Of a stretch of DNA of 64,000 nt, positions 487 to 61,262 are shown piece by piece. The DNA comes from Scyliorhinus canicula (lineage: Eukaryota). The notes under the pieces were generated by a model, which did not search any database, was not told the DNA's origin, and saw nothing but the letters and a program-made list of their open reading frames with translations. The first letter of the stretch is position 1. Every line of letters begins with the position of its first letter. The stretch lies in assembly GCF_902713615.1 (NCBI RefSeq), contig NC_052172.1, forward strand, positions 6,739,337-6,803,336, written 5' to 3'. A program made the translations under genes and the position numbers.

Positions 487-634
487 CGGTTGATTTGTAA
501 ATGATCTTCCAGCCTTTCCTCTCCCCGTGTTCATCCGTGTTGAAAGTTATTTCCACCACATTGGACAAATGTCCTTTTATAACTGGTGCTTGGTCTCCAC
601 AGAACGGGCCATATACCCTTCCTCCAGATGTGAC
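487..634 (-). CDS. C1S: Complement C1s-like exon, second half of CUB2 (VTSGGRVYGPFCGDQAP...FNTDEHGERKGWKIIYKST)
   Basis: Not in the ORF track; translated by hand. Acceptor ttccag and donor gtaata, 148 nt (phase 0 to 1). Resembles human C1s FGPYCG...FQTDLTGQKKGWKLRY. Confidence 0.9.
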
Positions 635-965
635 CTGGAATCAGGAGAATCCGCATTGGTTACAGAATTATGGAAAAGTCCGATGCTGGAGGAGGCCACT
701 CAGCCCATCACATCTGTACTAGAGCAATCCAGTTTGTCCCACTCCCTCTGCTTTGGCATCTCGTCCAGCAAAGGTTTTTCTATAATTTATTTGTCTAAAC
801 CTTTCACAATTATGAATGCCTCGAACCAATCCCCTCCTCGCTTTCTCATTTCTAAAGGGGACTAATTCCAGCTGTTCCAATCTCCCACGTAATCCCATTG
901 CCGAACCCTGGAACCATTGGAAAATTGATGGTTAATATTCGTTTCACCTGTGAGGAGAGAAAGAG

Positions 966-1131
966 NNNNNNNNNNNNNNNNNNNNNNNNNNNNNNNNNNN
1001 NNNNNNNNNNNNNNNNNNNNNNNNNNNNNNNNNNNNNNNNNNNNNNNNNNNNNNNNNNNNNNNNNNNNNNNNNNNNNNNNNNNNNNNNNNNNNNNNNNNN
1101 NNNNNNNNNNNNNNNNNNNNNNNNNNNNNNN
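966..1131. other. Assembly gap (166 N) flanked by GA-rich sequence
   Basis: Run of N. Confidence 0.99.
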
Positions 1132-1304
1132 AGAGAGCGAGAGAAAGAGAGAGAAATAGAGAGAGAGAGTAACTGAAAGAATGCTTAAGATCAAGTTCTC
1201 TCCAGTGGCATTGACCACGAGAGGTTAGCAGTCTGTGCAATGGGCTGGAGAAGGGCTGAATGTCCTCTTCCTGCTGTGTTTAACAGGCTGGAGTGGGATT
1301 CAAT

Positions 1305-1597
1305 ACAATGGTTAGTACTGTTGCTTCACAGCGCCAGGGTCCCAGGTTCGAGTCCTGGATTGGGTCACTGTCTGTGCAGAGTCTACACGTTCTCCCCGTG
1401 TCTGCGTGGGTTTCCTCCGGTTGCGCCAGTTTCTTCCCACAAGTCTCAAAAAACATGCTGTTTGGTGAATTGGACATTCTGAATTCTCCCTCGGTGTACC
1501 CTAACAGGCGCCGGAATGTGCGACTCGGGGATTTTCATGGTACTTCATTGCAGTGTTAAGGTAAGCCTACTTGTCAGAATAATAAAGATTATTATCA
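1305..1597 (+). mobile_element. V-SINE with (ATT)n-ending tail
   Basis: tRNA-like head (gttagtactgttgcttcacagcgccaggg...ggttcga), V-domain gtgggtttcctccgg, tail gtaagcctacttgt...aataaagattattat. Confidence 0.85.
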
Positions 1598-1651
1598 TGT
1601 CTTAAGGGACTTGCTGTAGGGATTAAGGGACCATTTTAAAGAGGGCCATAC

Positions 1652-1848
1652 CTTTAAGACATCAGTTATGCAACCGACTGAAGGGTCCCCTTCCACCTCA
1701 AAATCCTTTGCGAATCCCAGGATCACCTCGAAGCCTTGCTCAATCTCGATTCTGTACTGACACTGAGAGTTCTCCGCATAAGGTTCAGGATAGTTGGGGC
1801 TGGTGATCATGCCCTTGAAGCTGGTGGACACTTCGCCGCTGCAATTCA
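1652..1848 (-). CDS. C1S: C1s-like exon, first half of CUB2 (VNCSGEVSTSFKGMITSPNYPEPYAENSQCQYRIEIEQGFEVILGFAKDFEVEGDPSVGCITDVLK)
   Basis: ORF 1595..1849. Acceptor ccccag and donor gtatgg, 197 nt (phase 1 to 0). CUB motif SPNYPxPY; resembles C1s VNCSG...SPNYPKPYPENSRCEY. Confidence 0.92.
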
Positions 1849-1896
1849 CTGGGGGTGAAAAAAATACAGACTGGGTCTCAGACTGACAGCTCTGAT

Positions 1897-3400
1897 CATA
1901 GAATTTACAGTGCTAAAGGAGGTCATTCGGCCCATCGAGTCTGCACCGGTCCTTGGAAAGAGCACCCTACCCAAGCCCCCACCCTATCCCCATAACCCAG
2001 TAACCCCACTTAACCTTTATGGGCACTAAGGGCAATTTATCATGGCCAATCCACCTAACCCTCACATCTTTGTACTGTGTGAGAAAACCGAAGCACCCGG
2101 AGGGAACCCACGCAGGGGGAGAACGTGCAGACTCCGCACAGGCAGTGACCCAGCAGGGAATCGAACCTGGATCTGTGAAGCAACTGTTCCAACCACTGTG
2201 CTACCGTGCTGCCATGAATCAATGTCCTCTTATTGCTGTATCGAAGCTGGTTACCATTGTACACCCTGTTTACTGTCTGGAATTGATATATTTACCACAC
2301 ACGGTTTGTCGTATGAAGAGAGATTGAGCAGTTTAGGCTTATGCTCTGTCGAGGTTAGAAGAATGAGAGGAGATCAATTTGAGGTGTATGAGATGATGTA
2401 ATGTATGGATATGGTAAACAGAGCAGATCTTGCCTCTTGTAGGGTGGAGGCGTGAGCTTAAGTAGGGCAGACTCGATGGGCCGAATAACCTCCTTCTGCA
2501 CTGTAAATTCTATGATATGATTCTATGATTGTGGTGCAATCTAGAACGAGAGTACTTTTAGGGTGAGGGGCAGCAGATTTAAAACCGAGATGTGGAGGTA
2601 TTCTCCCAGAGGTTTGCGAACCTGTGGAACTCACTACCACAGAGTGCGGTGGATGAATCATAAAATAGAATCATAGAACCACCACAGTGCAGAAGGAGGC
2701 CATTCAGCCCATCAGGTCTGCACCGGCCCGCTGAAAGAGCACCCTACCCCACCTTATCTCCTTAACCCCAACTAACCATTGTACACCAAGGGGCAATTTA
2801 GCAAGACCAGTCCAGCTAACCCGCACACCTTTGGAATGTGGGAGGAAACCGGAGCACCCGGAGGCAGTTCATGCAGACACGGGGAGAACGTGTAAATTCC
2901 ACACAGACAGTCATAGAATTTACAGTGCAGAAAGAGATCATTAGGCCCATCAAGTTGACAACGGCTCTTTGAAAAAGCAGCCTACATAAGCCACATCTCC
3001 ACCCTATCCCCGTAACTCAGTAACCCCACCTAAGCTTTTGGACTCCTGCACACCTTTGGACTGGGAGGAAACCGGAGCACCCGGAGGAACCCCACGCAAG
3101 CATGGGGAGAACATGCAAACTCCACACTGTCACCTAAGATCAGAATTGAACCAAGGTCCCTGGCACTGTGAGGCAGCAGTCCCAACCATTGTGCCACTGT
3201 GCTACCCACAACTGGGACATTGGGAAAATTTAAGGAGGCGATGGGCAGATTTTTAATCAGTAAAGGGTCGAAGGGTAATGGAGAACGAGCAGGAAAGTGG
3301 AAATGAGGCTGAGAGGAGATCAGCCTTGATCGTATTGAATGGTGGACGGGATTGAGGGGCTGAATTACCCACTCCTGCTCCTAGGTCTTATGTTTTTCTG
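1897..3400. mobile_element. Cluster of HE1 SINEs (minus: ~1897-2212, ~2665-2910, ~2911-3200) and CR1 3' fragments
   Basis: Repeated catagaatttacagtgc...cattcggcccatc tails and ggaaaccggagcacccggagg cores. Confidence 0.85.
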
Positions 3401-4089: not shown

Positions 4090-4410
4090 CTGAACAAAGA
4101 AATAACAAGGAAAATTACAGCACAGGAACAGGCCCTTCGGCCCTCCCAGCCTGCGCCGATCCAGATCCTTTATCTAAACCTGTCGCCTATTTTCCAAGGA
4201 TCAACTTCCCTCTGTTCCCCGCCCATTCATATATCTGTCTAGATGCATCTTAAATGATGCTATCGTGCCCGCCTCTACCACCTCCGCTGGCAAAGTGTTT
4301 CAGGCACGCACCACCCTGCGCGTAAAAAACTTTCCACGAACATCTCCCTTAAGCTTTCCCCCTTTTACCTTGAAGTCGTGACCCCTTGTAATTGACACCC
4401 CCACTCTTGG
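4090..4410 (-). mobile_element. CR1 LINE 3' end
   Basis: aacaaag-type tail and acaggcccttcggccc 3' stem motif, followed by degraded ORF2 C-terminus. Confidence 0.75.
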
Positions 4411-5311: not shown

Positions 5312-5431
5312 CTCCACAAATTCTTTTGTTTTCTTGCAGGAAGTAGCCTGGTTTACAGGAGCAAAGGTATCCTCCGATATAGTTGTTGCAGTAATGACTA
5401 CATCTATCCTCCTCTTCACATTCATTGATAT
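5312..5431 (-). CDS. C1S: C1s-like exon, calcium-binding EGF (DINECEEEDRCSHYCNNYIGGYLCSCKPGYFLQENKRICG)
   Basis: Translated by hand. Acceptor ttccag and donor gtaaat, 120 nt (phase 1 to 1), six Cys. CSHxCNNxIGGY matches C1s (CSHFCNNFIGGY) better than C1r/MASP (CxHxCHN). Confidence 0.92.
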
Positions 5432-8839: not shown

Positions 8840-11800
8840 CTCACACACATATACACACACACAGTGTCTCACACACACATACACACACACAGTGTCTCAC
8901 ACACACATAGACACACACAGTGACTCACACACATACACGCACACAGTGACTCACACACATACACGCACACAGTGACTCACATACATACATACACACATGC
9001 AGTGACTCACACAGGCAAACACACACACAGTGACTCACACACAAACACATACACACACACACACTGACTCACACAGACAAACACACACACAGTGACTCAC
9101 ACACAAACACATACACACACAGTGACTCACACACAAACACATACACACACACAGTGACTCACACAGACAAAGACACTCACAGTAACTCACACACACACAC
9201 ACGCACACAAAGTGACTCACACACACAAACGCATACTTTGGGGCAGCGTGGTAGCATTGTGGATAGCACAATCGCTTCACAGCTCCAGGATCCCAGGTTC
9301 GATTCCGGCTTGGGTCACTGTCTGTGTGGAGTCTGCACATCCTCCCCGTGTGTGCGTGGGTTTCCTCTGGGTGCTCCAGTTTCCTCCCACAGTCCAAAGA
9401 TGTGCGGGTTAGGTGGATTGGCCATGATAAATTGCCCTTAGTGTTTGGTAGGGTTACTGAGTTATGGGGATAGGTGGAGGTGTTGACCTTGGGTAGGGTG
9501 CTCTTTCCAAGAGCCGGTGCAGGCTCGATGGGCCGAATGGCCTCCTTCTGCACTGTAAATTCTATGTAATCTATGTAATACGCTGATTCACACACACAAA
9601 AACTCATACACTGATTCACAAACACAGTGACTCACACACATACACACAAACTCATATTGATTCTCACACACACAGACATTCAGACATACACACAAACTCA
9701 TGCACAGAGACTCTCACACAGACAAAAACTCATAGTGACACACACGCACGCAAACTCATACACACTGACACACACACAAACTCAGTGATTCACACAACAC
9801 ACAAAGAAATTCAAACACACACAGAAACTCAGGGATTCTCACATATTCACAGAAACCCGTACACAGTGACTCACACACATACACCTAAACCCACACACAC
9901 ATACACACAAATGCATACACATTGATCCACAGACATACACACATACACAGACACAAACACACAAACTCATACACCGTGACTCACACATGCACAAACTCAC
10001 ACACTGACTCACACACACACAAACCCATACACAGTTACACACACAAACCCATACACAGTAACTACGCACACGCAAACTCATAAACAGTGACTTGCATTTT
10101 GTGTTATTTAGGGTACCCACTTATTTTTTTTCCACTTAAGGGGCAATGGACCTTTCCTAAACATCTGTGGGTTGTGGGGTGAATCCCAAGCAGATATGGA
10201 GTGTAACTGTGTAAGTTACTGTGTATCATACTGAAACTGACCTCAGGCCTGGATAGAAACCCGGTCCTGAGGCGCCATTGGCAGCAGTGCTAACTACTGT
10301 GCCACCTTGCCGCCATTCACAGTGTCTCACACACAAAAACTTATACACAATAACACACACAAACTCATACACAGTAACTCACACACAAACACAAACTAAT
10401 ACACAGTAGCTCACATAAACACAATCTGATACACAGTAACTGACACAGACAAACTCATCCACAGTAACTCACACACAAACACAAATTAACACAGAATAAC
10501 TCACACAAAACAAACTAACACACAGTAACGCACGCACAAATTCACACACAGTAACTCACACACACAAACTCATACACAGTAACTCTCACAAAACACAAAC
10601 TAATACACAGTAACACACACAAATTCATACATAATAACTCACACACACAAACTCATACACAGTAACTCTCACACAAATGCAAACTAATACACAGTAACTC
10701 ACACACAAAAACTCATACACAGAGACAGTCACATACACACAAACTAATACAGAGAGACACACAGACACATACACGAAAGCTCACACACAGTGACTCATAT
10801 GCACACACAAACTCATACACTGACTCACAAACACAGAAACCCGTACACAGTGACACATGCAAACGCGTACACAGTAAATCAGGCACACACAAGCGAATAA
10901 ACAAAAACACAATTTTTTTGAAATTTAGAGTACCCAATTAGATTTTTTTTCCAATTAAGGGGCAATCCACCTACCCTGAACATCTTTCGTTTGTGGGGGT
11001 AAGACGTACACAGACAGGAGGAGGATGTACAAACTCCACACCAACAGTGCCCCGGGGCCTGGATCGAACCCGGGTTCTCGCCACCATAGGCAGCAGTGCG
11101 AACCACTACACCACCGCACCACCCTTCACAGTGTCTCACACACAGAAACTAATACACAGTAACTCACACCCACACAATCATGCACAGTGACTCACACACA
11201 CCTAAACTCATACACAGTAACTCCCCCACACACACAAACTCAAACACAGCGAATCAAACGCACACAACCTCATACACAGTGACTCACACACACACACATG
11301 CAAACTCATACACAGTGTCTCACACACACACAAACGTATACACAGAGACTCACACACACCCACAGAAACTCATACACAGTGAATCACACACATACACACA
11401 CAAACACAAACTCATATACAGTGAATCACACACACGCAAACTGATACACAGTGACTCTCACACGCAAACACATACACAGTGATTCACGCACACAAACTCA
11501 TACACAGTGACTCACACAAACACATACAAACTCATACATAGTATCTCACACACAAACTCATACACAGCAACTCACAAAGAAACACAAACTCATACACAGT
11601 GACTTTCACACACACACACAAACTCCTACACAGTGACTCTCACACACATACAAACAAATACACAGTGAGCCCCGCACACAAACACAAACCTATACACAGT
11701 AACTCACACATGCTCAAATATATACACGGTGACTCAGAGTCAAACTCATAGTGTATCTCACACACACAAATACATACACATTAACTCACACAGAAACACA

Positions 11801-12201
11801 AACTCATACACAGTGACTTTCACACACACAGAAACCCGAACGCAGTGGCTTTCACACACACACAAATGCATACACAATGACTTTCACACACACACAAACT
11901 CATACACAGTGACTCTCACATACACACACTCATACACAGTGACTCTCGCACACACACACACACACACACAAACCCATACACAGTACCTCACACATGCTCA
12001 AATATATACACAGTAAGTCACAGTCAAACTCATACATAGTATCTCACACACACACAAACACATATATACATAGAACATAGAACACTACAGCGCAGTACGG
12101 GCCCTTCGGCCCTCGATGTTGCGCCGACAGTAACTCACACAGAAACACAAACTCCTATACAGTGCCTTTCACACACACAAGCACAAACTCATACACAGTG
12201 A

Positions 12202-12261
<60 letters not shown>

Positions 12262-29230: not shown

Positions 29231-29408
29231 CAACTGCTGCGTAATATGCCGCAAATCCAGTGTAGCGTTCCTCGTTGGAGAAATTGGATACAAACGTCAC
29301 CTTCATCCAGTTTCCAGTGGTGTAGTACTCAAGGGGGAATTGGAACTCCATCTCCACTCTGTCCTTGCTGCCACAGATTGGTGGATGAAGAGCTTTTTCA
29401 CTAAAAAC
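29231..29408 (-). CDS. C1S: C1s-like exon, second half of CUB1 ([15 protein letters not shown]...[24 protein letters not shown])
   Basis: Translated by hand. Acceptor tcccag and donor gtaaga, 178 nt (phase 0 to 1). Matches C1s SDFSNEERFTGFAAYY. Confidence 0.92.
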
Positions 29409-30841: not shown

Positions 30842-31058
30842 CTGCACATGATCATAGGCACAATCTGGGGTTGGCTCAATGTCGATGTGGGTGAAGGACA
30901 GTCTGATGCCGTAGCCAGTGGCAACCTGGATCTCCCAGCTCTGCTGCACATCATTGGGGTAACGCTGGGGGTAATCGCGAGACGTGATCTGGCCTTGCAG
31001 CCCACACATCGAGATGATGCAGGAGGCCGAAGGCAGCAAGAGGAGAGAGAAAGTCAGC
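30842..31058 (-). CDS. C1S: C1s-like exon, signal peptide plus first half of CUB1 (LTFSLLLLPSASCIISMCGLQGQITSRDYPQRYPNDVQQSWEIQVATGYGIRLSFTHIDIEPTPDCAYDHVQ)
   Basis: ORF 30734..31126. Acceptor ctttag and donor gtaatc, 217 nt (phase 2 to 0). Matches C1s GYGIHLYFTHLDIE...CAYDSVQ. Confidence 0.92.
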
Positions 31059-31302
31059 CTAAAGCAGCAAGAGAAACACATACACACAAACTGAATACAC
31101 CAAGGAAAACAGGGCAGCGGACACAAATATTCCTCATTGTTCCAGATTAGTTATTCTTCCACTCCCTGCCCAATTCACACCCTTATCTACATAACCCCGA
31201 ACAGGCGCCGGAATGTGGCGACTAGGGGCTTTTCACAGTAACTTCATTTGAAGCCTACTCGTGACAATAAGCAATTTTCATTTTCATAACCATCTGCAAT
31301 GT

Positions 31303-34300
31303 CAGAGGGCCAGTACTGAAGGAGTGCTGCACTGTCAGGGGATCAGCACTGAGGGAGTGCCGCACTGTCAGAGGGTCAGTACTCAGGGAGTGCTGCACAG
31401 TCAGTGGGTCAGTACTGAGGGAGTGCTCCACTGTCAGAGGGTCAGTACTGAGGGAGTGCTGCACTGTCAGAGGGGCAGTACTGAGGGAGTCCTGCAGTCT
31501 CAGTGGGTCAGTACTGAGGCAGTGCTGCACTGTCAGAGGGTCAGTAATGAGGCAGCGCCGCTCTGACAGAGAGTCAGTACTCAGGGAGTGCTGCACAGTC
31601 AGTGGGTCAGTACTGAGGCAGTGCTGCACTGTCAGAGGGTCAGTACTGAGGGAGTGCTGCACTGTCAGAGGGGCAGTACTGAGGGAGTCCTGCAGTCTCA
31701 GTGGGTCAGTACTGAGGCAGTGCTGCACTGTCAGAAGGTCAGTAATGAGGCAGCGCCGCTCTGACAGAGAGTCAGTACTGAGGGAGTGCTGCACTGTCAG
31801 AGGGTCAGTACTGAGGGAGTGCTGCACAGTCAGTGGGTCAGTACTGAGGCAGTGCTGCACTGTCAGAGGGTCAGTAATGAGGCAGTGCCGCTCTGACAGA
31901 GGGTCAGTACTGAAGGACTGCTGCACTGTCACAGGGTCAGTACAGAGGCAGTGCTCCTCTCCCACGGGGGGGGGGTCAGTACTGAGTGTGTGCCGCACTG
32001 TCAGAGGTTTAGTACTGAGGGAGTGCTGCACTGTCAGTGGGTCAGTACTAAGTGAGTGCCGCACTGTCAGAGCATCAGTACTGACGGAGTATTGCACTGT
32101 CAAAGGATCAGTATTGAAGGAGTGCTGCACTGTCCCAGGATCAGTACTGAGGGAGTGCTGCACTTTCAGAGGGTCAGTACTGAGAGGATATTGCACTGTC
32201 AATGGATCAGTACTGACGGAGTGCCGCACTGTCAGAAGGTCAGTATTCAGGGAGTGCTGCACTGTCAGAGGGTCAGTACTGAGTGAGTGCTCCACTGTCA
32301 CAGGGTCAGTATTGAGGGAGCGTGGCTCTGCCAGAGGGTTAGTACTGAGGGAGTGATGCACTGTCAGGGGCTCAGTACTGAGGGAGTGCCGCAGTGTCAG
32401 TGTCAGGGTCACAACTCTGACAGTGCACCACTCCCTCGATACTGACCCTCTGACAGTGCAGTACTCCCTCAGTACTGACCTTCTAACTGTGCACCACTCC
32501 ATCAGTCCTGACCCTCTGACTGTGTTTCACTCCCTCAGTATTGACCCTCTGACAGTGCAGCACTCACTCAGTACTGACCCTCTGACAATGCAGCACTGTC
32601 TCAGTACTGACCCTCTGACAATGCAGCACTTGCTCAGTACTGACTCCCTGACAGGGCGGCACTCCCTCAGAACTGACCGTCAAACAGTGCAACATTCCCT
32701 CAATACTGATCCTTTGACAGTGTAATACTCCCTCAGTACTGACGTCTGACCGTGCAGCACTGCCTCAGTACGAACCCTCTGGCAGAGCCACGCTCCCTCA
32801 GTACTAACCTTCTGACAGTGCGGCACTCCGTCAGTACTGACCCTCTGGCAGTGCAATACTCTCTCAGTACTGAACCTCTGACAGTGCAGCAATGCCTGAG
32901 TAGTGACCCTCTGACAGTGCAGCAGTCCCTCCGTACTGACCCTCTGATAGTGCAGCACTCCCTCAGTACTGACCCTCTGACAGTGCGGCACTCCCTCAAT
33001 ACTGATCCTTTGACAGTGCATCACTCCCTGAATACTGATCATTTGACAGTGCGGCACTCACTTAGTACAGACCCTCTAATAGTGCAGCACTCCCTCAGTA
33101 CTGACCCTCTGACAGAGCAGCACTCCCTCAATACTATACCTCTCACAGTGCGGCACTCACTCAGTAGTAACCCACTGACAGTGCAGCACTGCCTCAATAC
33201 TGACCCTCTGACAGTGCAACACTCCCTCAGTACTAAACCTATGACAGTGCTGCACTCCCTCAGTACTGACCCTCAGACAAAACGGCACTCCCTCTGTTCT
33301 GACCCTCTGGCAGAGCCACGCTCCCTCAGTACTGACCCTCTGACAGTGCGGCGCTCCCTCAGTACTAACCTTCTGACAGTGCAGCACTCTCTCAATACTG
33401 ATCCTTTGACAGCGCAATACTCTCTCAGTACTGAACCTCTGAAAGTGCAGCACTGCCTCAGTACTGACCCTCTGACAGTGCAGCACTCCCTCAGTTCTGA
33501 CCCTCTGACAGTGCGGCACTCCCTCAGTACTGACCCTCTGACAGTGCGGGACTCCCTCAGTACTGACCCTCTGACGGTGCAGCACTCCCTCAGTACTGAC
33601 CCTCTGACAGTGCAGCACTACCTGAGTAGTGACCCTCTGACAGTGCAGTAGTCCCTCCGTACTGACCCTCCGACAGTGCGGCGCTCCCTCAATACTGATC
33701 CTTTGACAGTGCAGTACTCCCTCAGTACTGATGATCTGACAGTGTGGCACTCACCTAGTACAGACCCACTGACAGTGCCGCACTGTCTCAGTATTAACCC
33801 TCTGACAATGCAGCACACCCTCAATACTAAACCTCTGACAGTGCGGCACTCCCTCAGTACTGCCCCTCCGACAGTGCAGCACTCCCTCAGTACTGACCCT
33901 CCGACAGTGCAGCACTCCCTCAGTACTGACCCTCTGACAGTGCAGCACTCCCTCAGTACTGACCCTCTGACAGTGCGGCACTCCCTCAGTACTGACCCTC
34001 TGACAATGCTGCCTCAATACTGACCCTGTGACAGGGCAGCACTCCCTCTGTACTGACCCTCTGACAGTGAAGCTTCAATACTTTTTTTTTTATAAATGTT
34101 TTTTATTGAGTTTTCATATTTTATACATGACAAATTACAAATTATTAGAGAGAGAGAAAAAAAAAGAAAACACAAAAATTTAACATGAATATTTACAGGT
34201 AAGCATCTTCATAACAACAATTGTGGCCGCCCCCTTTAGCCAGCATACATATTTTACATTCCCCAATATGGCCGAGGCACATGTTTATAGGCATTTATTT

Positions 34301-37300
34301 ATAGTTTGGTTTTGGGCCTTGGCTTGCCATCAAACCCCCATAACGAGCCCGTAACCCCCCCCCCCCCCCGCCCTCCCCCCGGCTACCTTCCCCCGATTCC
34401 CGTCCATTTTCCCCTGGTTCTTGGCCACCCGACTATTCTTCCTCATGTACGTTGGCCACAAACAGGTCCCGGAACAGTTGCATGAATGGCTCCCACGTAC
34501 TGTGGAAGCCGTCGTCCGACCCTCGGATGGCGAATTTGATTTTCTCCATTTGGAGAGATTCCGAGAGGTCGGACAGCCAGTCTGCAGCTCTGGGTGGTGC
34601 TGCTGACCGCCAGCCAAACAGGATTCTACGGCGGGCAATCAGGGAGGCAAAGGCAAGGGCGTCCGCCCTCCTCCCCAGGAATAGATCTGGCTGGTCTGAA
34701 ACCCCGAAGACCGCCACTATCGGGCATGGCTCCACCCTCACCCCCACCACTTTGGACATAGCCTCGAAGAAGGCTGTCCAGTACTCCACAAGTCTGGGGC
34801 AAGACCAGAACATGTGGACGTGGTTGGCCGGGCCTCTTTGGCACCGCTCACATCTGTCCTCCACCTCCGGGAAGAACCTACTCATACGGTTTCTCGTTAA
34901 GTGGGCTCTATGTACCACTTTTAGTTGCGTCAGGCTGAGCCTTGCGCACGTGGAGGTGGAGTTGACCCTATGCAGTGCTTCGCTCCAGAATCCCCACCCT
35001 ATCTCCATCCCCAGGTCGTCCTCCCATTTCCTTCTTGCTGCGTCCAGTACGGTGTCATCCCTATCTACCAGTCGGTCATACATGTCACTACAGTTCCCTT
35101 TCTCTAGGATACTTGCGTCCAGTAGGTCTTCCAGTAGTGTCTGTCGTGGCGGTTGTGGGTATGTCCTTGTCTCCTTTCGTAGGAAGTTTTTGAGCTGCAG
35201 GTACCGTAGCTCGTTCCCCCCAGCTAGCTGAAATTTCTCTGTCAGTTCGTCCAGTGTTGCGATCCTGTCGTCCGTGTATAGGTCCCTGACTGTCAGTGTC
35301 CCCCCGTCCTGCCTCCACCTTTTGAAGGTGGCGTCAGTCAGTGCTGGTTTGAACCTATGGTTGTTGCAGATGGGAGCCTTGTCCGACATTTTGTACAGGC
35401 CAAATTGCTGCCGCAGTTGGTTCCAGGATTGGAGGGTGGCTGTCACCACTGGGCTGGTGGAGTGTTTTTTGGGTGGGGATGGGAGTGCTGCCGTGGCGAG
35501 GGCCCGGAGGGAGGTTCCCATGCAGGAGGCCTCCTCCGCACGCACCCACTCGGCTTCTGGCTCCTGGATCCATCCCCTTACTCGCTTGGCTGTTGCCGCC
35601 CAGTGGTAGAATTGTAGATTCGGGAGGGCTAGCCCCCCCCCTGGATTTTGTTTTTTGTATGACCTTCTTTGGGATCCTAGCATTTTTACCCCCCCATATG
35701 AACGCCATGATATGTTTGTCCAGCGCTTTGAAAAAGGCCTTGGGGATGTAGATCGGAATGGATCTAAACAGGAAGAGGAACCTGGGCAGTACGTTCATTT
35801 TGATCGTCTGGACTCTTCCCGCGAGGGAGAGTGGGAGTGTGTTCCATCTTTGCAGGTCCTTTTTAACTTCCTCCGTCAGGCTGGTGAGGTTCCATTTGTG
35901 GATCCCTTTCCAGTCATTGGCTATTTGGATCCCCAGGTAGCGGAATTTATTTCGGGCTTGTTTGAACGGCAGCCCCTTTAGTGCTCCCCCCCCCCCCCTT
36001 ACGGGTGTACTGGGAAGATCTCGCTTTTGCTCATGTTGAGTTTGTAGCCCGAGAAGGCTCCAAACTCTTTCAGGAGCGCGATGATTCCGTCCATGCTGCT
36101 TTGTGGGTCCGAGATATAGAGGAGAAGATCATCCGCATAGAGTGAGACTCTGTGCTCTCTGCCTCCCCTTCGGATCCCCCTCCAATTTTTTGCTGCCCTG
36201 AGCGCGATTGCTAGCGGTTCGATTGCTAGTGCGAACAGCAGCGGGGACAGTGGGCATCCTTGTCTGGTGCCCCTGTGCAGCTGGAAGTATTGAGAGTTGG
36301 TATTGTTGGTCCATACACTCGCCATGGGAGCGTTGTATAGGAGCTTTACCCAAGCGGTGAACCCTGTTCCAAGCCCGAACTGCTCCAGTACCTCTATGAG
36401 GTATTTCCATTCGACTCTGTCGAAGGCCTTTTCTGCGTCCAGGGAGACGATCACCTCTTGTGTTCTCTCCCCGGAGGGGGTTATTATCACGTTCAGCAGG
36501 CGCCTGATGTTCGAGGTGAGCTGTCTACCTTTGACGAAGCCCGTCTGGTCCTCTGTGACCACCTCAGGTACACAGTCTTCTAGCCTTTTGGCTAGGATTT
36601 TGGCCAGTATTTTGGCGTCTGCGTTCAGCAGAGATATGGGTCTGTATGACCCACATTCCGTTGGGTCTTTGTCTTTCTTAGGTATCAGCGAGATTGAGGC
36701 CTGTGCTAACGTGGGTGGCAGTGTGCCCCTAGCTAGCGAGTCTGTGAACATCTCCCGCAGGTGCGGGGCCAGCGCTGTCGCAAATTCTTTGTAGAAGTCC
36801 GCCGGGAATCCGTCCGGTCCCGGCGCCTTCCCCGTCTGCATGGAGCTAATGCTCTCCATGATCTCTCCCAGTGCTAGTGGTGCTTCCAGATCCCGTTTTC
36901 TGCCCTCTCCCACGACTGGTATGTCCAGTCCGTCAAGAAACCGGTTCATCCCAGCCTTCTCCGTTGGGGGCTCTGAGGTGTACAGCTCTTGGTAGAAGGC
37001 CTTGAAAGTTTCGTTAATCCTCTCTGGTTCTGTTTCCCACGTGCCTCTGGTACCTCTGATTTGCGCAATTTCTCTGCTGGCAGACTGCTTTCTCAGCTGG
37101 TGTGCCAAAAGGCGGCTGGCTTTGTCTCCGTGTTCGTACAGGGTCCCGCGCGCCTGGCGGAGTTGGTGCACTGCTTTCCTGGTGGAGAGCAGGTCAAAGT
37201 TCCTTTGTAGTTCTTTTCTCTCCGCCAGGAGCTCTACGGTCGGGGCCTCGGAGTATTTACGGTCTACCTCCAGTATGGAGTCGACCAGCTTCTGCCTAGC

Positions 37301-40300
37301 CACCCTTTCCACCCTATCTCTTTGCCCTTTGTAGGCAATGATTTCCCCTCTTAGTACGGCCTTAAGCGCTTCCCAGAACGTGGAGGATGAGACCTCCCCG
37401 TTTTGGTTGTTCTCCGTGTATTCCGCTATGGCCCGCGCTATCCTTTCGCTGAAGGCCTTGTCAGCTAGAAAGGCACCGTCCAGCCTCCATGTGGGGCGCT
37501 GGGCCCTTCCCGTCTCCAGCCGCACGTCCATGTAGTGTGGGGCGTGGTCTGATATCACAATTGCGGAGTATTCCACGTTGTCTATCCCTGGAAGCACCGT
37601 TTTCCCCACCACAAAGAAGTCAATTCTGGTATACACGTTGTGTACTGGGGAGAAGAAAGAGAATTCTTTCTCCCACGGGTGGGCGAATCTCCAGGGGTCC
37701 ACTGCTCCCATCTGCTCCATATAGTGACTGAGTTCCCTTGCCATGTTTGAGGTTTTCCCCGTTCTGGGGTTTGATCTGTCCGTCTTTGGATCCTGTACAC
37801 AGTTGAAGTCCCCCCCAATGATTAGTCGGTGCGTGGAGCTTCAATACTGACCCGGTGACAGTGCAGCACTCACTCAGTAGTACTGACCCTCTGACAGTGC
37901 AGCACTGCCTCAGTACTGACCCACTGACAGTGCGGCACCCCCTCAGTACTGACCCTCTGACAGTGCGGCACTCCCTCAGTACTGACCCTCTGACAGTGCG
38001 GCACTCCTTCAGTACTGACCCTCTGACAGTGCAGCACTCCCTCAGTACTGACCCTCTGACAGTGCAGCACTCCCTCAGTACTGACCCTCTGACAGTGCGG
38101 CACTCCCTCAGTACTGACCCTCTGACAGTGCAACACTCCCTCAGTACTGACCCTCTGACAGTGCAACACTCCCTCAGTACTAACCCTCTGACAGTGCGGC
38201 ACTCCCTCAGTACTGACCCTCTGACAGTGCGGCACTCCCTCAGTACTGACCCTCTGACAGTGGAGCTTCAATACTGACCCGGTGACAGTGCAGCACTCCC
38301 TCAGTACTGACCCTCTGACAGTATGGCACTCCCTCAGTACTGACCCTCTGACAGTGCGGCACTCCCTCAGTACTGACCCTCTGACAGTGCGGCGCTCCCT
38401 CAGTACTGACCCACTGACAGTGCGGCACTCCCTCAGTACTGACCCTCTGACAGTGCGGCACTCCCTCAGTACTGACCCTCTGACAGTGCGGCACTCCTTC
38501 AGTACTGACCCTCTGACAGTGCAGCACTCCCTCAGTACTGACCCTCTGACAGTGCAGCACTCCCTCAGTACTGACCCTCTGACAGTGCAGCACTCCCTCA
38601 GTACTGACCCTCTGACAGTGCGGCACACCCTCAGTACTGACCCTCTGACAGTGCGGCACTCCCTCAGTACTGACCCTCTGACAGTGCAGCACTCCCTCAG
38701 TACTGACCCTCTGACAGTGCGGCACTCCCTCAGTACTGACCCTCTGACAGTGGAGCTTCAATACTGACCCGGTGACAGTGCAGCACTCACTCAGTAGTAC
38801 TGACCCTCTGAGAGTGCACCACTCCCTCGATACTGACCCTCTGACAGTGCAGCAGTCCTTCAGTACTGACCTTCTAACAGTGCACCATTCCATCAGTCCT
38901 GACCCTCTGACTGTGTGGCACTCCCTCAGTACTGACGCTCTGACAGTGCAGCACTCCCTCGGTATTGACCCTCTGACAGTGCAGCACTCACTCAGTACTG
39001 ACCCTCAGACAGTGCAGCATTCCCTCAGTTATGGCCCTCTGACAGTCCAGCACTCCCTCAATACTGACTCTCTGACAGTGTAGCACTCCATTAGTACGCC
39101 CCTCTGACAGTGCAGCACTCCTTCAGTACTGACCTTCTGACAGTGCGGCACTCCCTCAATAGTGACCCTCTGACAGTGCAGCACTGTAACAGTACTGACC
39201 CTCTGACAGGGCAGCAATTGCTCAATCCTGACCCCTTGGCAGTGCGGCACTCTCTCAATACTGATCGTTTGACAGTGTAATACTCCCTCAGCACTGGTGC
39301 TCTGACCGTGCAGAGGGTCAGTACTCAGTGAGTGCTGCACTGCCATAGGGTCAGTATTTAGGCTGCACTGTCAGACGGTCAGTACTGAGGGAGTGCTGCA
39401 CTGTCAGAGGATCAGTTCTGATGGAGTGCCGCACTGTCAGAGTGTCAGTACTGAGGGAGTACCCAACTGTCAGAGGGTCATTACTGAGGGAGTGCAGCAG
39501 TGTCAGAAGGTCAGTACTGAAGGAGTGCTGCACTGTCAGAGGGTCAGTACTGAGGGAGTGCAGCACTGTCAGAGTGTCAGTACTGAGGGAGTGCAGCACT
39601 GTCAGAGGGTCAGTACTGAGGGAGTGCGCCACTGTTCGAGGGTCAGTATTGAGGGAGTGCTGCACTGTCAGAGGATCAGTACTGAGTGACTGCTGCACTG
39701 TCACAGGGTCGGTATTGAGGTTGCACTGTCAGAGGGTCAATACCGAGGGAGTGCTGCACTGTCAGAGGGTCAGTACTGAGGGAGTGGCGCACTGTCAGAG
39801 GGTCAGTACTGAGGGAGTGCTGCACGGTCAGAGGGTCAGTACTGCGGGAGAGCTGCACTGTCAGAGGCTCAGTACTGAGGGAACGCTGCACTGTCAGAGG
39901 GTCAGTACTGATGTGAGTGCCGCACTGTCAGAGGGTCAGTACTGAGGGAGTGCTGCAGTGTCACAGGGCCAGTACTGAGGGAGCGCCACACTGTCAGTGG
40001 GTCAGTACTGAGGGAGTGCTGCATTGTCAGAGGGTCAGTACTGAGGGAGTGCCACACTGTCAGAGGGCCAGTACTGAGGGAGCGCCACACTGTCAGAGGG
40101 CCAGTACTGAGGGAGCGCCACACTGTCAGTGGGTCAGTACTGAGGGAGTGCTGCACTGTCAGAGGGTCAGTACTGAGCGACGCCGCTCTGTCACAGGGTA
40201 AGAACTGAGGGAGTGCTACAGTCTCAGAGGGTCAGTACTGAGACAGTGCTTCACTGTCAGAGGGTCAGTACTGAGGAAGAGCCGCTCTGTCAGAGGGTCA

Positions 40301-43260
40301 GTACTGAGGGAATGCTGCACTGTCAGGGGGTCAGTACTGAGTGAGTGCTGCACTGTCAGAGGGTCAGTGCTGAGAGAGTTCTTAACTGTCAGAGGTTCAG
40401 TACTGACGGAGTGCCGCACTGTCAGAGGGGCAGTACTGAGGGAGTGCTGCACTGTCAGAGACTCAGTACTGAGGGAGTGCCGCACTGTCAGAGCGCTTGT
40501 ACTGAGTGAGTGCCGCACTGTCAGAGCATCAGGACTGAGGGTGCATTGCACTGTCAAAGGGTCGGAACTGAGGGAGTGCTGCACTGTCAGAGGGTCAGTA
40601 CTGAGTGAGTGCCGCACTGTCAGAGCATCAGTACTGAGGGTGCATTGCACTGTCAAAGGGTCAGTACTGAGTGAGTGCTGCACTGTCAGAGGGTCAGTAC
40701 TGAGGGATTGCTGCACTGTCAGAGGGTCCGTACCGAGGGAGTGCTGCACTGTTCGAGGGTCAGTATTGAGAGAGTGCTGCACTGTCAAAGGATCAGTACT
40801 GAGTGAGTGCTACACTGTCACAGGGTCAGTATTGATGTTGCACTGTTAGAGGGTCAATACTGAGGGAGTGCTGATCTGTCAGAGGGTCAGTACTGAGGGA
40901 GCGTGGCTCTTCCAGAGGGTCAATACTGACGCAGTGCTTCACGGTCAGGGGATCAGTACTGCGGGACAGCTGCACTGTCAGAGGGTCAATGCTGAGGGAG
41001 CGCTGCACTGTCAGAGAGTCAGTACTGATGTGAGTGTCGCACTGTCAGGGGGCCAGTACTGAGGGAGTTCGACACTGTCAGTGGGTCAGTACCGTGAGAC
41101 TGCTGCACTGTCAATGGGTCAGTATTGAGTGAGTGCTGCACTGTCAGAGGTTCAGTAGTGACGGAGTGCCGCACTATCAGAGGGTCAGTACTGAGGGAGT
41201 GCTGCACTGTCAGAGGGTCAGTACTGAGGGAGTGCTGCACAGTCAGACGGTCAGTACTGAGTGAGTGCCGCACTGTCAGAGCATCAGTACAGAGGGTGTA
41301 TTGCACTGTCAAAGGGTCGGAACTGAGGGTGTGCTGCACTGTCAGATGGTCAGTACTGAGGGTGTGCTGCATTCTCAGAGGGTCAGTAAAGAGGGAGTGC
41401 CGCACTGCCAGATGGTCAGTACTGAGCGAGCGCCATTCCGTCAGAGGGTCAGTACTGAGTGAGTGCTGCACTGTCAGAGGGTCAGTACTGACGAGTGCCG
41501 CACTGTCAGAGGGTCAGTACTGAGGGAGTGCAGCACTGTCAGAGGGTCAGTACTGAGGGAGTGCTGCACTATCAGAGGGTCAGTACTGAGGGAGAGCTGC
41601 ACTGTCAGAGGTTCAGTACTGAGGGAGAGCTGCACTGTCAGAGGTTCGGTACTGAGAGAGTGCCACACTGTCAGATGATCAGTACTGACGGAGCGCTGCA
41701 TTGTCAGAGGGTCAGTACTGAGGGAGTGCGGCACTGCCAGAGGATCAGAACTGGGTTTGTGCCGCACTGTCAGAGGGGCAGTACTGAGGGTGCTGTGCTG
41801 TCAGAGGGCCAGGACTGAGGGAGTGCTGCACTGTAAGAGGGTCTGTACTGAGGGAGTGCTGCACTGTCAGAGAGTCAGTGCTGAGGGAATGCTGCACTCT
41901 CAGAGTGTCAGTACAGAGGGAGTGCTGCACTGTCAGAGGGTCAGTACTGAGGGATTGCTGCACTGTCAGAGGGTCCGTACCGAGGGAGTGCTGCACTGTT
42001 CGAGGGTCAGTATTGGGAGAGTGCTGCACTGTCAAAGGATCAGTACTGAGTGAGTGCTACACTGTCACAGGGTCAGTATTGATGTTGCACTGTTAGAGGG
42101 TCAATACTGAGGGAGTGCTGATCTGTCAGAGGTTCAGTACTGAGGGAGCGTGGCTCTTCCAGAGGGTCAATACTGATGCAGTGCTTCACGGTCAGGCGTT
42201 CAGTACTGCGGGACAGCTGCACTGTCAGAGGGTCAATGCTGAGGGAGCGCTGCACTGTCAGAGAGTCAGTACTGATGTGAGTCTCGCACTGTCAGGGGGC
42301 CAGTACTGAGGGAGTTCGACACTGTCAGTGGGTCAGTACCGTGAGACTGCTGCACTGTCAATGGGTCAGTATTGAGTGAGTGCTGCACTGTCAGAGGTTC
42401 AGTACTGACGGAGTGCCACACTGTCAGAGGGTCAGTACTGAGGGAGTGCTGCACTGTCAGAGGGTCAGTACTGAGGGAGTGCTGCACAGTCAGACGGTCA
42501 GTACTGAGTGAGTGCCGCACTGTCAGAGCATCAGTACTGAGGGTGTATTGCACTGTCAAAGGGTCGGAACTGAGGGCGTGCTGCACTGTCAGAGGGTCAG
42601 TACTGAGTGTGTGCTGCATTCTCAGAGGGTCAGTAAAGAGGGAGTGCCGCACTGCCAGATGGTCAGTACTGAGCGAGCGCCATTCCGTCAGAGGGTCAGT
42701 ACTGACGAGTGCCGCACTGTCAGAGGGTCAGTACTGAGGGAGTGCAGCACTGTTTGAGGGTCAGTACTGAGGGAGTTCTGAACTGTCAGAGGTTTAGTAC
42801 TGAGGGAGTGCCGCACTGTCAGAGGGTCAGTACTGAGGGAGTGCTGCACTGTCAGAGGGTCAGTACTGCGGGAGTGCTGCACTGTCAGAGGGTCAGTACT
42901 GAGGGAGAGCTGCACTGTAAGAGGTTCGGTACTGAGAGAGTGCCACACTGTCAGAGGATCAGTACTGACGGAGCGCTGCATTGTCAGAGGGTCAGTACTG
43001 AGGGAGTGCGGCACTGCCAGAGGATCAGTACTGAGTTTGTGCTGCACTGTCAGAGGGGCAGTACTGAGGGTGCTGTGCTGTCAGAGGGCCAGGACTGAGG
43101 GAGTGCTGCACTGTCAGAGGGTCTGTACTGAGGGAGTGCTGCACTGTCAGAGGGTCTGTACTGAGGGAGTGCTGCACTGTCAGAGAGTCAGTGCTGAGGG
43201 AATGCTGCACTCTCAGAGTGTCAGTACAGAGGGAGTGCTGCACTGTCAGAGGGTCAGTAT
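31303..43260. repeat. 33-bp minisatellite array (cagtactgagggagtgctgcactgtcagagggt) in alternating orientation, split by an L1
   Basis: Forward 31303-32410; reverse 32413-34081 and 37833-39312; forward 39313-43260. Confidence 0.97.
34082..37832 (-). mobile_element. 5'-truncated fish-type L1 LINE (EN C-terminus, RT, Cys-rich C-terminus)
   Basis: ORFs 35999..37744, 35355..35798 and 34433..35683 (KAPGPDG, SLDAEKAFDRV, RGTRQGCPLSPLLF, SLYADD, CERC...HMFWSC); poly(A) tail and AATAAA at the left end; 15-bp TSD gtg(a/g)agcttcaatac at 34067-34081 and 37833-37847. Confidence 0.95.
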
Positions 43261-47366: not shown

Positions 47367-47371
47367 CACAT
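47367..47371 (-). CDS. C1S: Probable proximal start-codon exon of the C1s-like gene (ATGTG|gtgagt; gives Met-Trp when spliced to 31058)
   Basis: Minus strand reads GTGGAAATGTG|GTGAGT: consensus donor, purine at -3, and the phase-2 junction the next exon needs. A candidate acceptor tctttcag would start the exon at 47569. Confidence 0.65.
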
Positions 47372-57264: not shown

Positions 57265-58760
57265 CTTGATGGGCACCGGGGTGGCATGTTGTTCTCAGGT
57301 TATTTCCATTATACACGGGCATGAGGCAGGGTGCCCCTGTCTCCGTTATTGTTTGTTTTAGCGACGGAGCCATTGACCACTGTGCTTAGATTGTCAGGAG
57401 AGTGGCGAGATATTGAGAGGGGGGATTAAGAGCATAAAGTTCCCCTTTATGTGGACGATTTATTGTTGGACGTCTCTGATCCTCTCACAGGTATGGGAGA
57501 AATTATGAAACTTGAAAAAGTTAAGACCCTTCTCAGGGCACAGATTGAATATGAGCGAGGACAAAATCTTCCCGATGAATTCCCTGGGGAAGAGGACAGA
57601 TCTGGAGAGGCTGCCTTTTAAACTGGACAAGACAAAGTTTAAATAATTAGGAAATCAGGTGGCGCATTACTGGGCTCTGTTTCCTAAACTTTTGGCTGGT
57701 CGAGTGGAGGAGGTGAAGGGGCACCTGAGGAGGTGGGGTGCCTTGCCGCTATCACTGTGGGTAGAGACAGACGTTCAAAATGAATGTTCTGCCAAGATTT
57801 TTATTTGTGTTCCAGTCTCTTACCATCTTCCTCCCTAAATATTTTTTCACGAGGGCTGACAGGTTCATCTCTGCCTTTGTCTGGGTGGAAAAGACTCCCA
57901 GGACAAGAAGAGATTTCCTTTTCTTTACTTTTATCAATTTTAGAGTCCCCAATTCATTTGACCAACTAAGGGGCAATTTAGCGTGGCCAATCGACTTGCC
58001 CTGCACATCTTTGTGTTGTGGAGGCGACACCCATGCAAACACAGGCAGAATGTGCAAACTCCACACAGACAGTGACCTGGGGTCGGGATTGAACCTGGGA
58101 CTTCAGCGCCTCGAGGCAGTAGTGCTAACCACTGTGCCACCGTGCGGCCGAGAAGAGCTTGCCTGTAGAGAGGACGACAATCGGGTGGGTTGGCGCTGCC
58201 TAACCCAAATCTTTATTACTGGGCGGCGAACATTGGGAAAGTGAGAGGATGGTTCGAGGAGCTGGACCAGGGTAGAAGGGGCCTCGTGTGTAGGGTCATG
58301 TTTAAGGACGTTTGTTACAGGCCCCTCTTCCACTCTCCCGGGCCAGACCTGTGATCAGCCGGTCGTAGTGGCATCTTTAAAAGTCTGGAACCAATTTAGG
58401 CAACATTTTGAACTGGGGGACAAATCATTACTGTCACCAATCTGTGATAATCATAGGATTCCACCGTCAGGGAAGGAGGCAATGTATAGGATCTGGAGAG
58501 AGAAGTGGCTGAGATGTTGAAGGATTTGTCCGTGGAAGGTGGGTTTGCGATTCTAGAGGAGATGGAAAAGACATTTCACAGCCCGAGGGTGAGTGCATTT
58601 CGGTATTTGCAGCCGAGGAACTTTATCCGTGAAGAGCTGTCTTCATTCCCCCAATTGCCGAGACCCACACTGGTAGATGGGATGCCATCATGGGATGAGA
58701 TGGGGCAAGGGAAGATCTCCGATATATATCAGTGTTTGCTGGTGACAAGAAAGTGAAGGG
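57265..58760 (+). mobile_element. Old degraded L1 ORF2 fragment with a nested minus-strand HE1 (57913-58150, TSD agaagag)
   Basis: RQGxPLSPLLF, YVDD, MNVLPRFLFVFQSL; TSD at 57906-57912 and 58151-58157. Confidence 0.8.
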
Positions 58761-60322
58761 GAAATCATAACCTGTCTGCTCTGATCTGAAATGGCTTCTG
58801 GAAGTCCATAAATAACATTCTTTCAACATTTCCCTGCTCACTACCTTACTCATCTCTTCAAAATATTCCTGTGGTGAATCCATGCTGTCTCTTCCTGATT
58901 AACTGAACGTTTTCGACGTATTCAGTTATCCAATCCCTGATTATAGAGTCCAACAATTTCCCCACCATAGATGTGAGACTAACCGCGCTGGGATTCCCTG
59001 CTTTCCTCCTTTCATCCTTCTTAAAAAGTGGAATGCCATGAGCAATTTTACAACCCAGAGCGAGGACTCCTGAATCTAGGGACCTCTGGAACATTACAGT
59101 TAGGGCATCTCAATGTGTTCCTCTACTTCCTTTAACACTCTCGGAAATAACCTGGTCCTGGGGATTTGTCACTCTTTAGTTCCATTAATTATCTCATTAA
59201 TAATGTTTTATCGATTAATTGTATTTACTCTTTATCCCCCATCCTCAGCTGATGTCCCCCTGATTTCCGTTTCTCCTGCAAGTTATCCTCCTTTCCTACT
59301 GCAAATGCTGAGGCAAACTAATTATTCAACATGTCTGCCATGTTCTAATACTCACTGACAATATCCGCACTTTCAGTCTTTCATTGACCAATATTGCTCC
59401 GAACCACCCACGTTCCCGTTCAGTAATAAAGACATGTTTGAGTCAAATATCAGCTTTTCCCAACAAATTGGCCCCCTTTTTCGCTGAATGTGTTCAATAA
59501 ATTAGTGCCAGATGGGTTCCTGTTATATCCTGACAGCTTTCATTTTTATTCTTTCCTCAGGATGGTCAAATGGGCAGAAACGTGGCTGATATATTCTAAC
59601 CCTGAAAATTGTGAGGCGATACACTTTGGATGAAGCAATTTGAAGAGAAAGTATACAATGAAAGGCCTGACACTAATAGGTGATGAAAAATGTTTATGGG
59701 TCACTCGTCTTTATCAATCGATGTATGGATAACAGAAGCATGGACGTCATGTTGGAGTTGAATGGAACGTTGGTGAAGCCAACTGTGTGCAATTCTGGAC
59801 GCCAGATAACAGGAAGTATGTAATCGCACTGGAGTGAGTGAAGAGGAGATTCACAAGGATGTTGCCTGGGATAGAATATTTAAGTTATGAAGAGAGGTTG
59901 GATAGGCTTGGGATATTTTCTCTGAAGAAAAGATGGTTGAGGGGTGACCTGATCGAGGTGTACAGGATTATGATGGATATAGACAGGGTGGAGCTGTTCC
60001 CTTAGTTGAAGGGTCCCTTGCGAGGTGACACAAGTTCAGGGTGAGGGGCAGAATATTTATGCTGGATTTATGGGAAACGTTTTTTCCCCCAGAGGGTGGT
60101 GATGGTCTGGAGTGCACTGCCTGAGAGGTTGGTAGGGGCCGGTTGCCTCACATCCGTTAATAAGTACCTGGATGAGTACTTGGCACGTCATAATATTCAA
60201 GGCTAATATTCAACTAATGGCCAATTGGATTAGGTGAGCAGGACAGGTGATTTCATGCGTAGGTGCAGACTGGATGGGCCGAAGGACTTGTGAGCTGCAT
60301 TAATCTGTGATTCTGTGATTCT
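58750..60322. mobile_element. Degraded CR1 fragments (minus ~58750-59400; plus ~59560-60322)
   Basis: SAVSLTSMVGKLL...QHGF; 3' (CTGTGATT)n tail. Confidence 0.75.
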
Positions 60323-60381
60323 CTGGCAAGACACACTTATCCATTTCTGCCACCTGGTGGCGGGAATGAGCTCTCGGTGCA

Positions 60382-60420
60382 GGTTTTTGTCGCTGTGGGT
60401 CCGCTTTCTCAAACGCTGTG
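60382..60420 (-). other. 23-bp-spacer recombination signal sequence
   Basis: Minus strand: CACAGCG + TTTGAGAAAGCGGACCCACAGCG (23 nt) + ACAAAAACC (perfect nonamer), abutting the V coding end. Confidence 0.95.
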
Positions 60421-60712
60421 ATACTACAAGCACAGAAGTAGACAGCGGTGTGAGATACAGCGGCCTGTCTCAGTTTGAGACTAAACAGCGTGTTGCTAGT
60501 CCTGGCTGCATCGAACGGCTCGGAGGTGTAGTTGTTGAGATTCCCTGCTCCAGCAGAATAGAAAAGAGCTTCTATTGCCCGATTTGGTTGTTGTCTGTAC
60601 CAGAACATTTGCGGATAGTTGGTATTCTTCAGCGTGCAGCTGATAATGGCTGATTTTCCTGCTGCGATCGAGAGCACAGATGGCGACTGTTCCACGTAAG
60701 AGGCGAGTATTC
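60421..60712 (-). CDS. TRBV: T-cell receptor V exon, most likely TCR-beta V (ILASYVEQSPSVLSIAAGKSAIISCTLKNTNYPQMFWYRQQPNRAIEALFYS...FSLKLRQAAVSHTAVYFCACS)
   Basis: ORF 60300..60728. Acceptor cggcag; canonical Cys, WYRQ Trp and YFC, no stops, directly followed by an RSS. Chain assignment (beta rather than delta or alpha) rests on FR2/FR3 style and the CRE promoter. Confidence 0.85.
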
Positions 60713-61073
60713 CTGCCGAATAAAACATCCGTTAGAATCTCAGGTTAGGCAGAGATAAACATATAAAACCGATTTATAAAGCATGTTTCGCGCTCCTGAA
60801 AGTCCCAAATCCTTTTATGAACAAGAAAGAATTCGTTATAATCTGGTCATTGTTGTGATGGGGTCACTGACTTCCGCCCAGAGGGCACCTCTGAAAATAC
60901 CGAACTCCCGCCGCACTGACCTCGAGAGAATCACCGTGTCCTCAATCTCAGGGGTAAGAGTGGCATCTGCACCTTCTGATTCCGAGGACAAATTCCTCCG
61001 AGTGAGTCGATAACTGACATTATAATGCAGAGCTCCACAAAGACCTCTCCAAAGGTTTGAAACTTTGACTTAC

Positions 61074-61122
61074 GTGGAATTAGTAACACCATCAATGTTA
61101 GATAATGAACTTCACACAACAT
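61074..61122 (-). CDS. TRBV: Leader exon of the TCR V gene (MLCEVHYLTLMVLLIP)
   Basis: ATG at 61122, 49 nt, donor gtaagt. Phase 1 splices in frame to the V exon (C|GA = Arg). Hydrophobic core. Confidence 0.85.
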
Positions 61123-61204
61123 GTTGTCAGCTTGAATCGATACTGCTTCGCTCTGTAAACTAATGGAGCTCAGGACCACGTTCAGAGGCCGCCCCTGTCC
61201 TCTG

Positions 61205-61262
61205 GCTGATTAAATATGAAGCATTCGGTTGAGGTTAACACGCTGACGTCATCTTCCGGAAT
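61205..61262 (-). promoter_or_regulatory. TCR V promoter: CRE plus ETS, with a TATA-like element
   Basis: Palindromic TGACGTCA at 61244-61251, ETS CCGGAAG within 61253-61260 and AT-rich CATATTTAAT near 61208-61217, about 85-140 bp upstream of the ATG. A CRE-containing decamer is a known Vbeta promoter element. Confidence 0.7.

Follow-up and report, generated by a model that had tools for sequence, protein, structure and literature searches.

A 64,000-nucleotide stretch of the Scyliorhinus canicula genome (4.22 Gb), positions 6739337-6803336 of NC_052172.1 (C27; the whole stretch is called the window here), contains a T-cell receptor (TCR) beta variable (V) gene and, on the same strand, the first six exons of a gene of the complement C1s family. 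The window falls within the V array of the TCR-beta (TRB) locus, which spans about 6.04-6.89 Mb on C27; the array is ~0.8 Mb long, and the window V sits between other V genes at 6.69 and 6.81 Mb. An earlier note, made from the letters of the window, had described an intact V gene whose recombination signal sequence (RSS) points into a C1s gene, and had proposed that the diversity (D), joining (J) and constant (C) segments lie beyond C1s, that the V joins by inversion to a D-J-C cluster on the other side, or that the V is an orphon.

The TRBV gene is encoded on the minus strand. The coding part of its leader exon occupies 61074-61122, with the ATG at 61122-61120 and a GT donor, and is followed by a 361-nt GT..AG intron (60713-61073) and by a V exon with an open frame (60421-60712, C27:6799759-6800050). 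The V exon carries the immunoglobulin (Ig) V-domain hallmarks Cys23, Trp41 and Cys104, together with the motifs WYRQ and YFCACS, and its single-domain matches in the PDB are mostly TCR beta V domains, the best ones included. The nearest V protein in the databases is from Scyliorhinus torazame (61% identity), and seven intact paralogues with 83-95% amino acid identity, plus one split copy, are found on C27. The start codon of the window V is intact, and in the paralogue at 6645837 (locus L003, C27:6644164-6648164) ACG replaces the leader ATG; judged by its sequence, the window V is the best preserved among the three closest copies and is apparently functional.

Directly downstream of the V exon lies an RSS with a 23-nt spacer (60382-60420, minus strand), which consists of the heptamer CACAGCG at 60420-60414 and the nonamer ACAAAAACC at 60390-60382 and points toward lower coordinates. 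The nonamer matches the consensus perfectly; the heptamer has C at position 6, so that the RSS, claimed earlier to be a consensus signal, is near-consensus only. All 39 nt of the RSS are identical in three of four paralogues and 38 of 39 in the fourth, among flanks that diverge by 7-24%. Upstream of the leader, an octamer of the cyclic AMP response element (CRE) type, TGACGTCA, occurs at 61244-61251 (minus strand), ~120 bp upstream of the V ATG and only once in the 64-kb window. It is exact in two of four V paralogues and has one mismatch in the other two, and it is a putative element of the V promoter. As a general V-beta promoter element of the locus the octamer was discarded, since it is present in only one of 15 other V genes. 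In one V paralogue (locus L002) it is replaced by TGACGCCA, and in the window a run of 18 G residues at 61269-61286 (minus strand) lies directly upstream of it.

Three runs of a single study (X3, X11 and X13) yielded RNA contigs that document transcription of the V gene; in them the leader is spliced to the V exon and the 361-nt intron is excised exactly. The open frame and the leader of the earlier description are both confirmed. The CRE octamer lies 52 nt upstream of 61192, the position reached by one error-free RNA contig, which extends the 5' untranslated region of the leader exon to at least that point.

The RSS of the V gene faces the C1s-like gene, which starts ~13 kb below it on the same strand, and this arrangement agrees with the earlier description. 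The exons, located by tblastn with shark, ray, chimaera and frog C1s and delimited by splice sites, are all on the minus strand and run from 47371 to 487, the start coordinate given previously, which is exactly the last base of exon 6. Exon 1, predicted from a motif match to the bamboo-shark gene model, contributes only the five coding nucleotides ATGTG before a GTGAGT donor (47367-47371). Exon 2 (30842-31058) encodes the signal peptide and the first half of CUB1, exon 3 (29231-29408) the second half of CUB1, exon 4 (5312-5431) a calcium-binding EGF module (DINEC...), and exons 5 (1652-1848) and 6 (487-634) the first and second halves of CUB2. All introns are GT-AG, and the six exons yield a stop-free product of 288 residues that is 69% identical to the complement C1s subcomponent-like protein of Chiloscyllium (bamboo shark). 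A coding exon of 5 nt is credible because the same motif, GGAAATGTG with its splice junction before GTGAGT, begins the annotated bamboo-shark homologue as its first coding exon; when exon 1 is spliced to 31058, the product begins with MWLTFSLLLL, which is a signal peptide of the C1s type. Given this motif, an in-exon ATG at 31081 was dropped as the start in favor of exon 1 at 47371.

Further exons were found to the left of the window, also on the minus strand: a first CCP1 exon at C27:6739074-6739184, about 150 bp outside, a first CCP2 exon at C27:6723132-6723278, and a single serine protease (SP) exon of 268 codons at C27:6710350-6711153. The gene thus has the order CUB1-EGF-CUB2-CCP1-CCP2-SP, with CCP1 and CCP2 known from their first exons and the second halves not located, and it extends over ~76 kb from the ATG at 6786707 to the SP exon at 6710350.

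Several comparisons place this gene in the C1s family. Its SP domain scores best against human C1s in the PDB (219.6 bits, compared with 184.6 for C1r and 175.5 for MASP-2), and the SP exon bears the marks of the C1r/C1s/MASP-2 lineage, namely that the domain is encoded by one exon, that its active-site Ser is specified by AGT and that a histidine-loop cysteine is absent. Among 1.8 billion proteins searched, the closest are named C1s or C1s-like and come from sharks, rays, chimaera, bichir, gar, lungfish and frogs. In a maximum-likelihood tree the C27 genes group with the C1s-like proteins of Chiloscyllium, Heptranchias and Mobula and with the 'Complement protein 1S' of Callorhinchus (support 95/95); on these comparisons the gene is placed with C1s, and not with C1r or MASP. 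A C1r-like gene, whose SP domain is nearest to human C1r (204.5 bits), is located on C16 at 83.87-83.92 Mb; therefore, the C27 gene is not part of a C1R/C1S pair. Two neighboring SP domains, each encoded by a single exon and belonging to a second C1s lineage, were detected at C29:11578533-11591489, one of which scores 236.5 bits against human C1s, and the C29:11.59 Mb domain groups with another Callorhinchus C1s-like protein. Cartilaginous fish seem to have two old C1s lineages.

Within the window no J-like motif and, among the open reading frames (ORFs), no C-type domain was found, as stated earlier; D segments, which that statement had included, were not scanned for in the window, and the one D core found on C27 is at 6.234 Mb. 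Annotation of the flanks located the missing segments beyond the C1s-like gene and on the same strand as the V, as the first of the earlier proposals had anticipated. The contiguous flanking DNA examined covers 200 kb (6.18-6.38 Mb) in addition to the window and short loci; exons off the window were mapped by whole-genome protein searches, and 6.38-6.69 Mb is covered by exon-level matches only. Nine J segments with an FGxGTKLxVL motif and a GT donor lie at C27:6229788-6233811, and a D segment with the core GGGACAGGGGGGA, a 5' 12-RSS and a 3' 23-RSS lies at C27:6234264-77, 450 bp upstream of the first J. Vertebrates share GGGACAGGGGGGA as the conserved D-beta core. A C-beta exon 1 resembling a TCR beta constant domain is found at C27:6212126-6212506, and near C27:6207789 lies a transmembrane exon that shows the TCR beta pattern Tyr..Ile-Leu..Lys...Tyr; all of these are on the minus strand. 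In a PDB search with C-beta exon 1 alone, TCR beta and Ig constant domains were not separable, and the assignment of the chain as beta follows from the D, the J segments, the transmembrane exon and the V similarity. The other V genes in the 200-kb stretch terminate in CASS, CAWS or CAAS and have 23-RSSs, which together with the D-J-C cluster identifies the locus as TRB.

The mapping of V exons along C27, with queries from two V families, shows minus-strand exons at 6.25-6.833 Mb, with both orientations intermingled over 6.31-6.40 Mb, and plus-strand, inverted exons at 6.04-6.18 Mb on the other side of C-beta; none were found past 6.833 Mb with these queries. The window V therefore lies in cis with a D-beta flanked by 12- and 23-RSSs, with J-beta segments and with a C-beta that has a transmembrane exon; it is on the same strand as this cluster, which is 566 kb away and downstream. 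Because V and D share their orientation and the 23-RSS of the V faces the 5' 12-RSS of the D, joining is expected to be deletional. Under the 12/23 rule, the V 23-RSS would join the D 5' 12-RSS by deletion, and the excised DNA would carry everything between them, with the C1s-like gene of the window and another copy at lower coordinates among it.

The same map bears on the proposal that the V joins by inversion to a D-J-C cluster at higher coordinates. C27 has a single C-beta exon and a single match to the D core (19-mer search, exact or with up to one mismatch), both at lower coordinates and in the orientation of the V, there is no V or C match past 6.833 Mb, and the inverted V genes of the locus sit beyond C-beta, at 6.04-6.18 Mb. 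Nothing was found that counts for an inversion, which is accordingly regarded as extremely improbable, and the proposal is given up.

C27 carries the CUB1 and SP exons of the C1s-like gene in triplicate, always on the minus strand. Copy 1 (C27:6561071 to 6619141) is embedded in the V array and carries Ser195Gly (AGT to GGT). Copy 2, the gene of the window (C27:6710350 to 6786707), is also embedded and carries His57Cys (CAT to TGT) and Asp189Gly, both in substitution clusters. Copy 3, with its SP exon at 6845328 and a CUB1 exon at 6885956-6886078, lies outside, at the 5' edge of the array and just beyond the last V (at 6832985), upstream of which its SP exon is found at a distance of 12.3 kb; this copy retains His57, Asp102, Ser195 and Asp189. 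The V genes around the copies repeat at matching offsets of 135-150 kb, so that the triplicated block of ~135-150 kb consists of five V genes, a C1s-like gene and one to five V genes of the window V family. The three copies form one tight cluster in the tree, with synonymous divergence (dS) of 0.034-0.046 among them, suggesting that the triplication is recent. The ratio of nonsynonymous to synonymous divergence (dN/dS) is 0.32 for copy 3 vs 1, against 0.73 (3 vs 2) and 0.83 (1 vs 2) for the pairs that include the window copy. All C1s-like exons examined remain open.

A region that is rich in satellites and long interspersed elements (LINEs) and contains an assembly gap invites the alternative that the adjacency of V and C1s-like gene, or the threefold repeat, is an artefact of assembly, either a misjoin or retained haplotigs. 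This is considered quite improbable. A V of the window family lies upstream of C1s-like exon 1 in two blocks, in the same order, and the V region is present in independent DNA runs of the species. Additionally, the DNA divergence of 2-7% between the copies and their distinct catalytic-site substitutions far exceed what allelic variation would produce and indicate that the copies are not alleles.

Combined, these results favor, with a probability of about 0.85, a transcribed V gene of the TRB array that would join by deletion, with C1s-like copies embedded in the array by block duplication together with V genes. The C1s-like genes within and beside the array are explained by the duplication of a flanking gene along with V genes: a C1s-lineage gene that flanked the 5' end of the V array would have been copied into the array together with V genes. 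Copy 3, lying outside the array, would always escape excision, and its catalytic triad is intact; deletional joining of the V genes 5' of the embedded copies 1 and 2 would eliminate these two from T cells, and they may no longer be constrained as proteases. Since each has lost a catalytic residue, the embedded copies are most likely decaying or non-catalytic duplicates. The deletion of C1s in T cells suggested in the earlier note probably concerns such a non-catalytic duplicate, because the window copy has neither His57 nor the S1-pocket residue Asp189. Anatomy, positions, orientations, V splicing and residue changes were observed directly; the use of the window V in rearrangement, the somatic excision and the lack of function of the embedded copies are inferred.

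Several points weigh against this interpretation. The RNA contigs, whose assembly cannot bridge diverse junctions, stop within the V exon and show no V-D-J junction with the window V, and one RNA contig runs through an RSS in germline configuration. Strictly, a J cluster without a C segment could still be present between 6.38 and 6.69 Mb, the interval covered at exon level. The triplication is read from the assembly, and the dN/dS ratios are built on 17-28 differences. It is also possible that the embedded copies keep a non-catalytic function.

The missing junction and the germline contig are also what could be expected if the V were an orphon or a silent gene that never rearranges, making its adjacency to the C1s-like gene inconsequential, and germline transcription of a V alone could yield spliced leader-V RNA. 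The contig that reads through the RSS, however, bears the V-exon variants of the paralogue at 6645837 and not those of the window V. The window V is located in the main V array with V genes on either side, its ATG, splice sites, frame and RSS are intact, and the RSS has remained near-invariant despite the divergence of its flanks. An orphon is therefore judged very unlikely and is rejected, and the earlier description of a functional-looking orphon does not fit a V that is transcribed and spliced inside a 0.8-Mb array and has a conserved RSS.

In comparison with functional TRBV genes of other species, the window V shows no essential difference: it has leader and V exons, the Ig V hallmarks and a 23-RSS, and it is positioned upstream of a D whose GGGACAGGGGG core is conserved. 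Its heptamer reads CACAGCG, its leader intron of 361 nt is long, and the CRE octamer belongs to the window V family and not to the locus at large. The C1s-like gene in turn resembles human C1S and the C1s-like genes of sharks, rays and chimaera in domain order, in its one-exon SP domain with AGT-encoded Ser and without the histidine-loop cysteine, and in an Arg-Ile activation site; it differs in that the window copy has Cys for His57 and Gly for Asp189 and that the shark gene is not beside C1r, the C1r-like gene being on C16.

The TRB locus of mammals and birds contains embedded trypsinogen genes (PRSS1, PRSS2 and relatives). The shark locus has a trypsinogen-type arrangement, in that C1s-like copies 1 and 2 lie between V segments and the D-J-C cluster on the same chromosome. 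In both cases, genes for secreted S1 proteases with no role in antigen recognition are found among or beside TRBV segments, have been co-amplified with V genes by block duplication, and would be removed by deletional joining when they lie between a used V and D-J-C. Unlike the trypsinogens, the shark genes encode multidomain proteases of the C1s clade (CUB-EGF-CUB-CCP-CCP-SP), and two of the three copies carry losses of catalytic residues. A Pfam trypsin scan of C27 detected no protease exons other than the three C1s-like SP exons.

The earlier note, pointing to a TRB-C1S/C1R neighborhood in birds, had raised an ancestral linkage. A C1s-lineage gene bordering the TRB V array on its 5' side may reflect such a linkage in the ancestor of jawed vertebrates, kept in some form elsewhere; in amniotes, trypsinogens would then have taken its place as the co-amplified protease. 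This extension is doubtful. No V was found near the C1s-like gene of the bamboo shark (scaffold BEZZ01000538.1, 10 kb flanks) or on a Heptranchias contig (4.7 kb downstream), a result that is uninformative since V genes begin only 12.3 kb downstream in S. canicula. The literature searched contained nothing on C1s-type genes in a TRB locus or on a TRB-C1S linkage in sharks or chicken. In amniotes the TRB locus is flanked by MOXD2/DBHL, the gene family on the 5' side, and by EPHB6 (PMC11754216). A search for exons of DBH-like (Cu2 monooxygenase) genes gave no match on C27, and an amniote flank of the MOXD2/DBHL type is therefore not seen there. A DBH-like monooxygenase gene was located on C16 at 84.60 Mb, 0.7 Mb from the C1r-like gene.

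The results provide a map of a shark TRB locus with one D, nine J and one C, a V array of ~0.8 Mb and inverted V genes 3' of C. New here are the triplication of the C1s-like gene with V blocks, the catalytic losses in the embedded copies and the leader-V splice in RNA. A TRB locus that carries and co-amplifies a secreted serine protease gene is thus not confined to the trypsinogens of amniotes, and the locus is a natural example of duplicated genes whose catalytic residues have been lost and which would be somatically deleted in one cell lineage. The age of the linkage between TRB and C1s becomes testable through synteny. The finding is descriptive, not mechanistic, and implies no new mechanism of recombination.

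A second TRB-like locus was noted at C6:220.51-220.76 Mb. Its V exons are 54-65% identical to those of C27, and its two C-beta-like exons (identities of 52% and 45%) point in opposite directions; the interval yielded no C1s-like exon.

Returning to the window, the 15-mer GGAAATGTGGTGAGT of C1s-like exon 1 recurs at 63932-63946 (minus strand), 2.8 kb upstream of the V leader, where a chance recurrence is expected at about 1e-4 in 64 kb. No C1s-like exon follows this recurrence, which may be a relic exon 1 from the block duplication. The assembly gap mentioned above comprises 166 N at 966-1131, flanked on both sides by GA/AG repeats, in the intron between exons 5 and 6 (CUB2a/CUB2b). The end of exon 5 and the start of exon 6 are both in phase 0, on the same strand and in order, and the joined 288-residue peptide aligns with the Mobula homologue in one ungapped alignment; therefore, the gap costs no coding sequence.

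The introns of the C1s-like gene are packed with a 10-kb satellite bearing CACAGTG, a 33-bp satellite and LINE fragments. Intron 1 measures 16.3 kb, swollen by the 33-bp satellite and LINE sequence, compared with ~0.85 kb in the bamboo shark. Arrays of the 33-bp satellite occur in both orientations at 31294-34073 and 37841-43259, with LINE reverse-transcriptase ORFs between them (34436-37840). The 10-kb satellite (11127-21506; unit of 28-32 bp with CACAGTG) sits in the intron between CUB1b and EGF and contains 28 strict heptamer-12-nonamer matches (nonamer at least 7/9), all on the plus strand; in this orientation they would face the V 23-RSS for deletion and are candidate cryptic RSSs.

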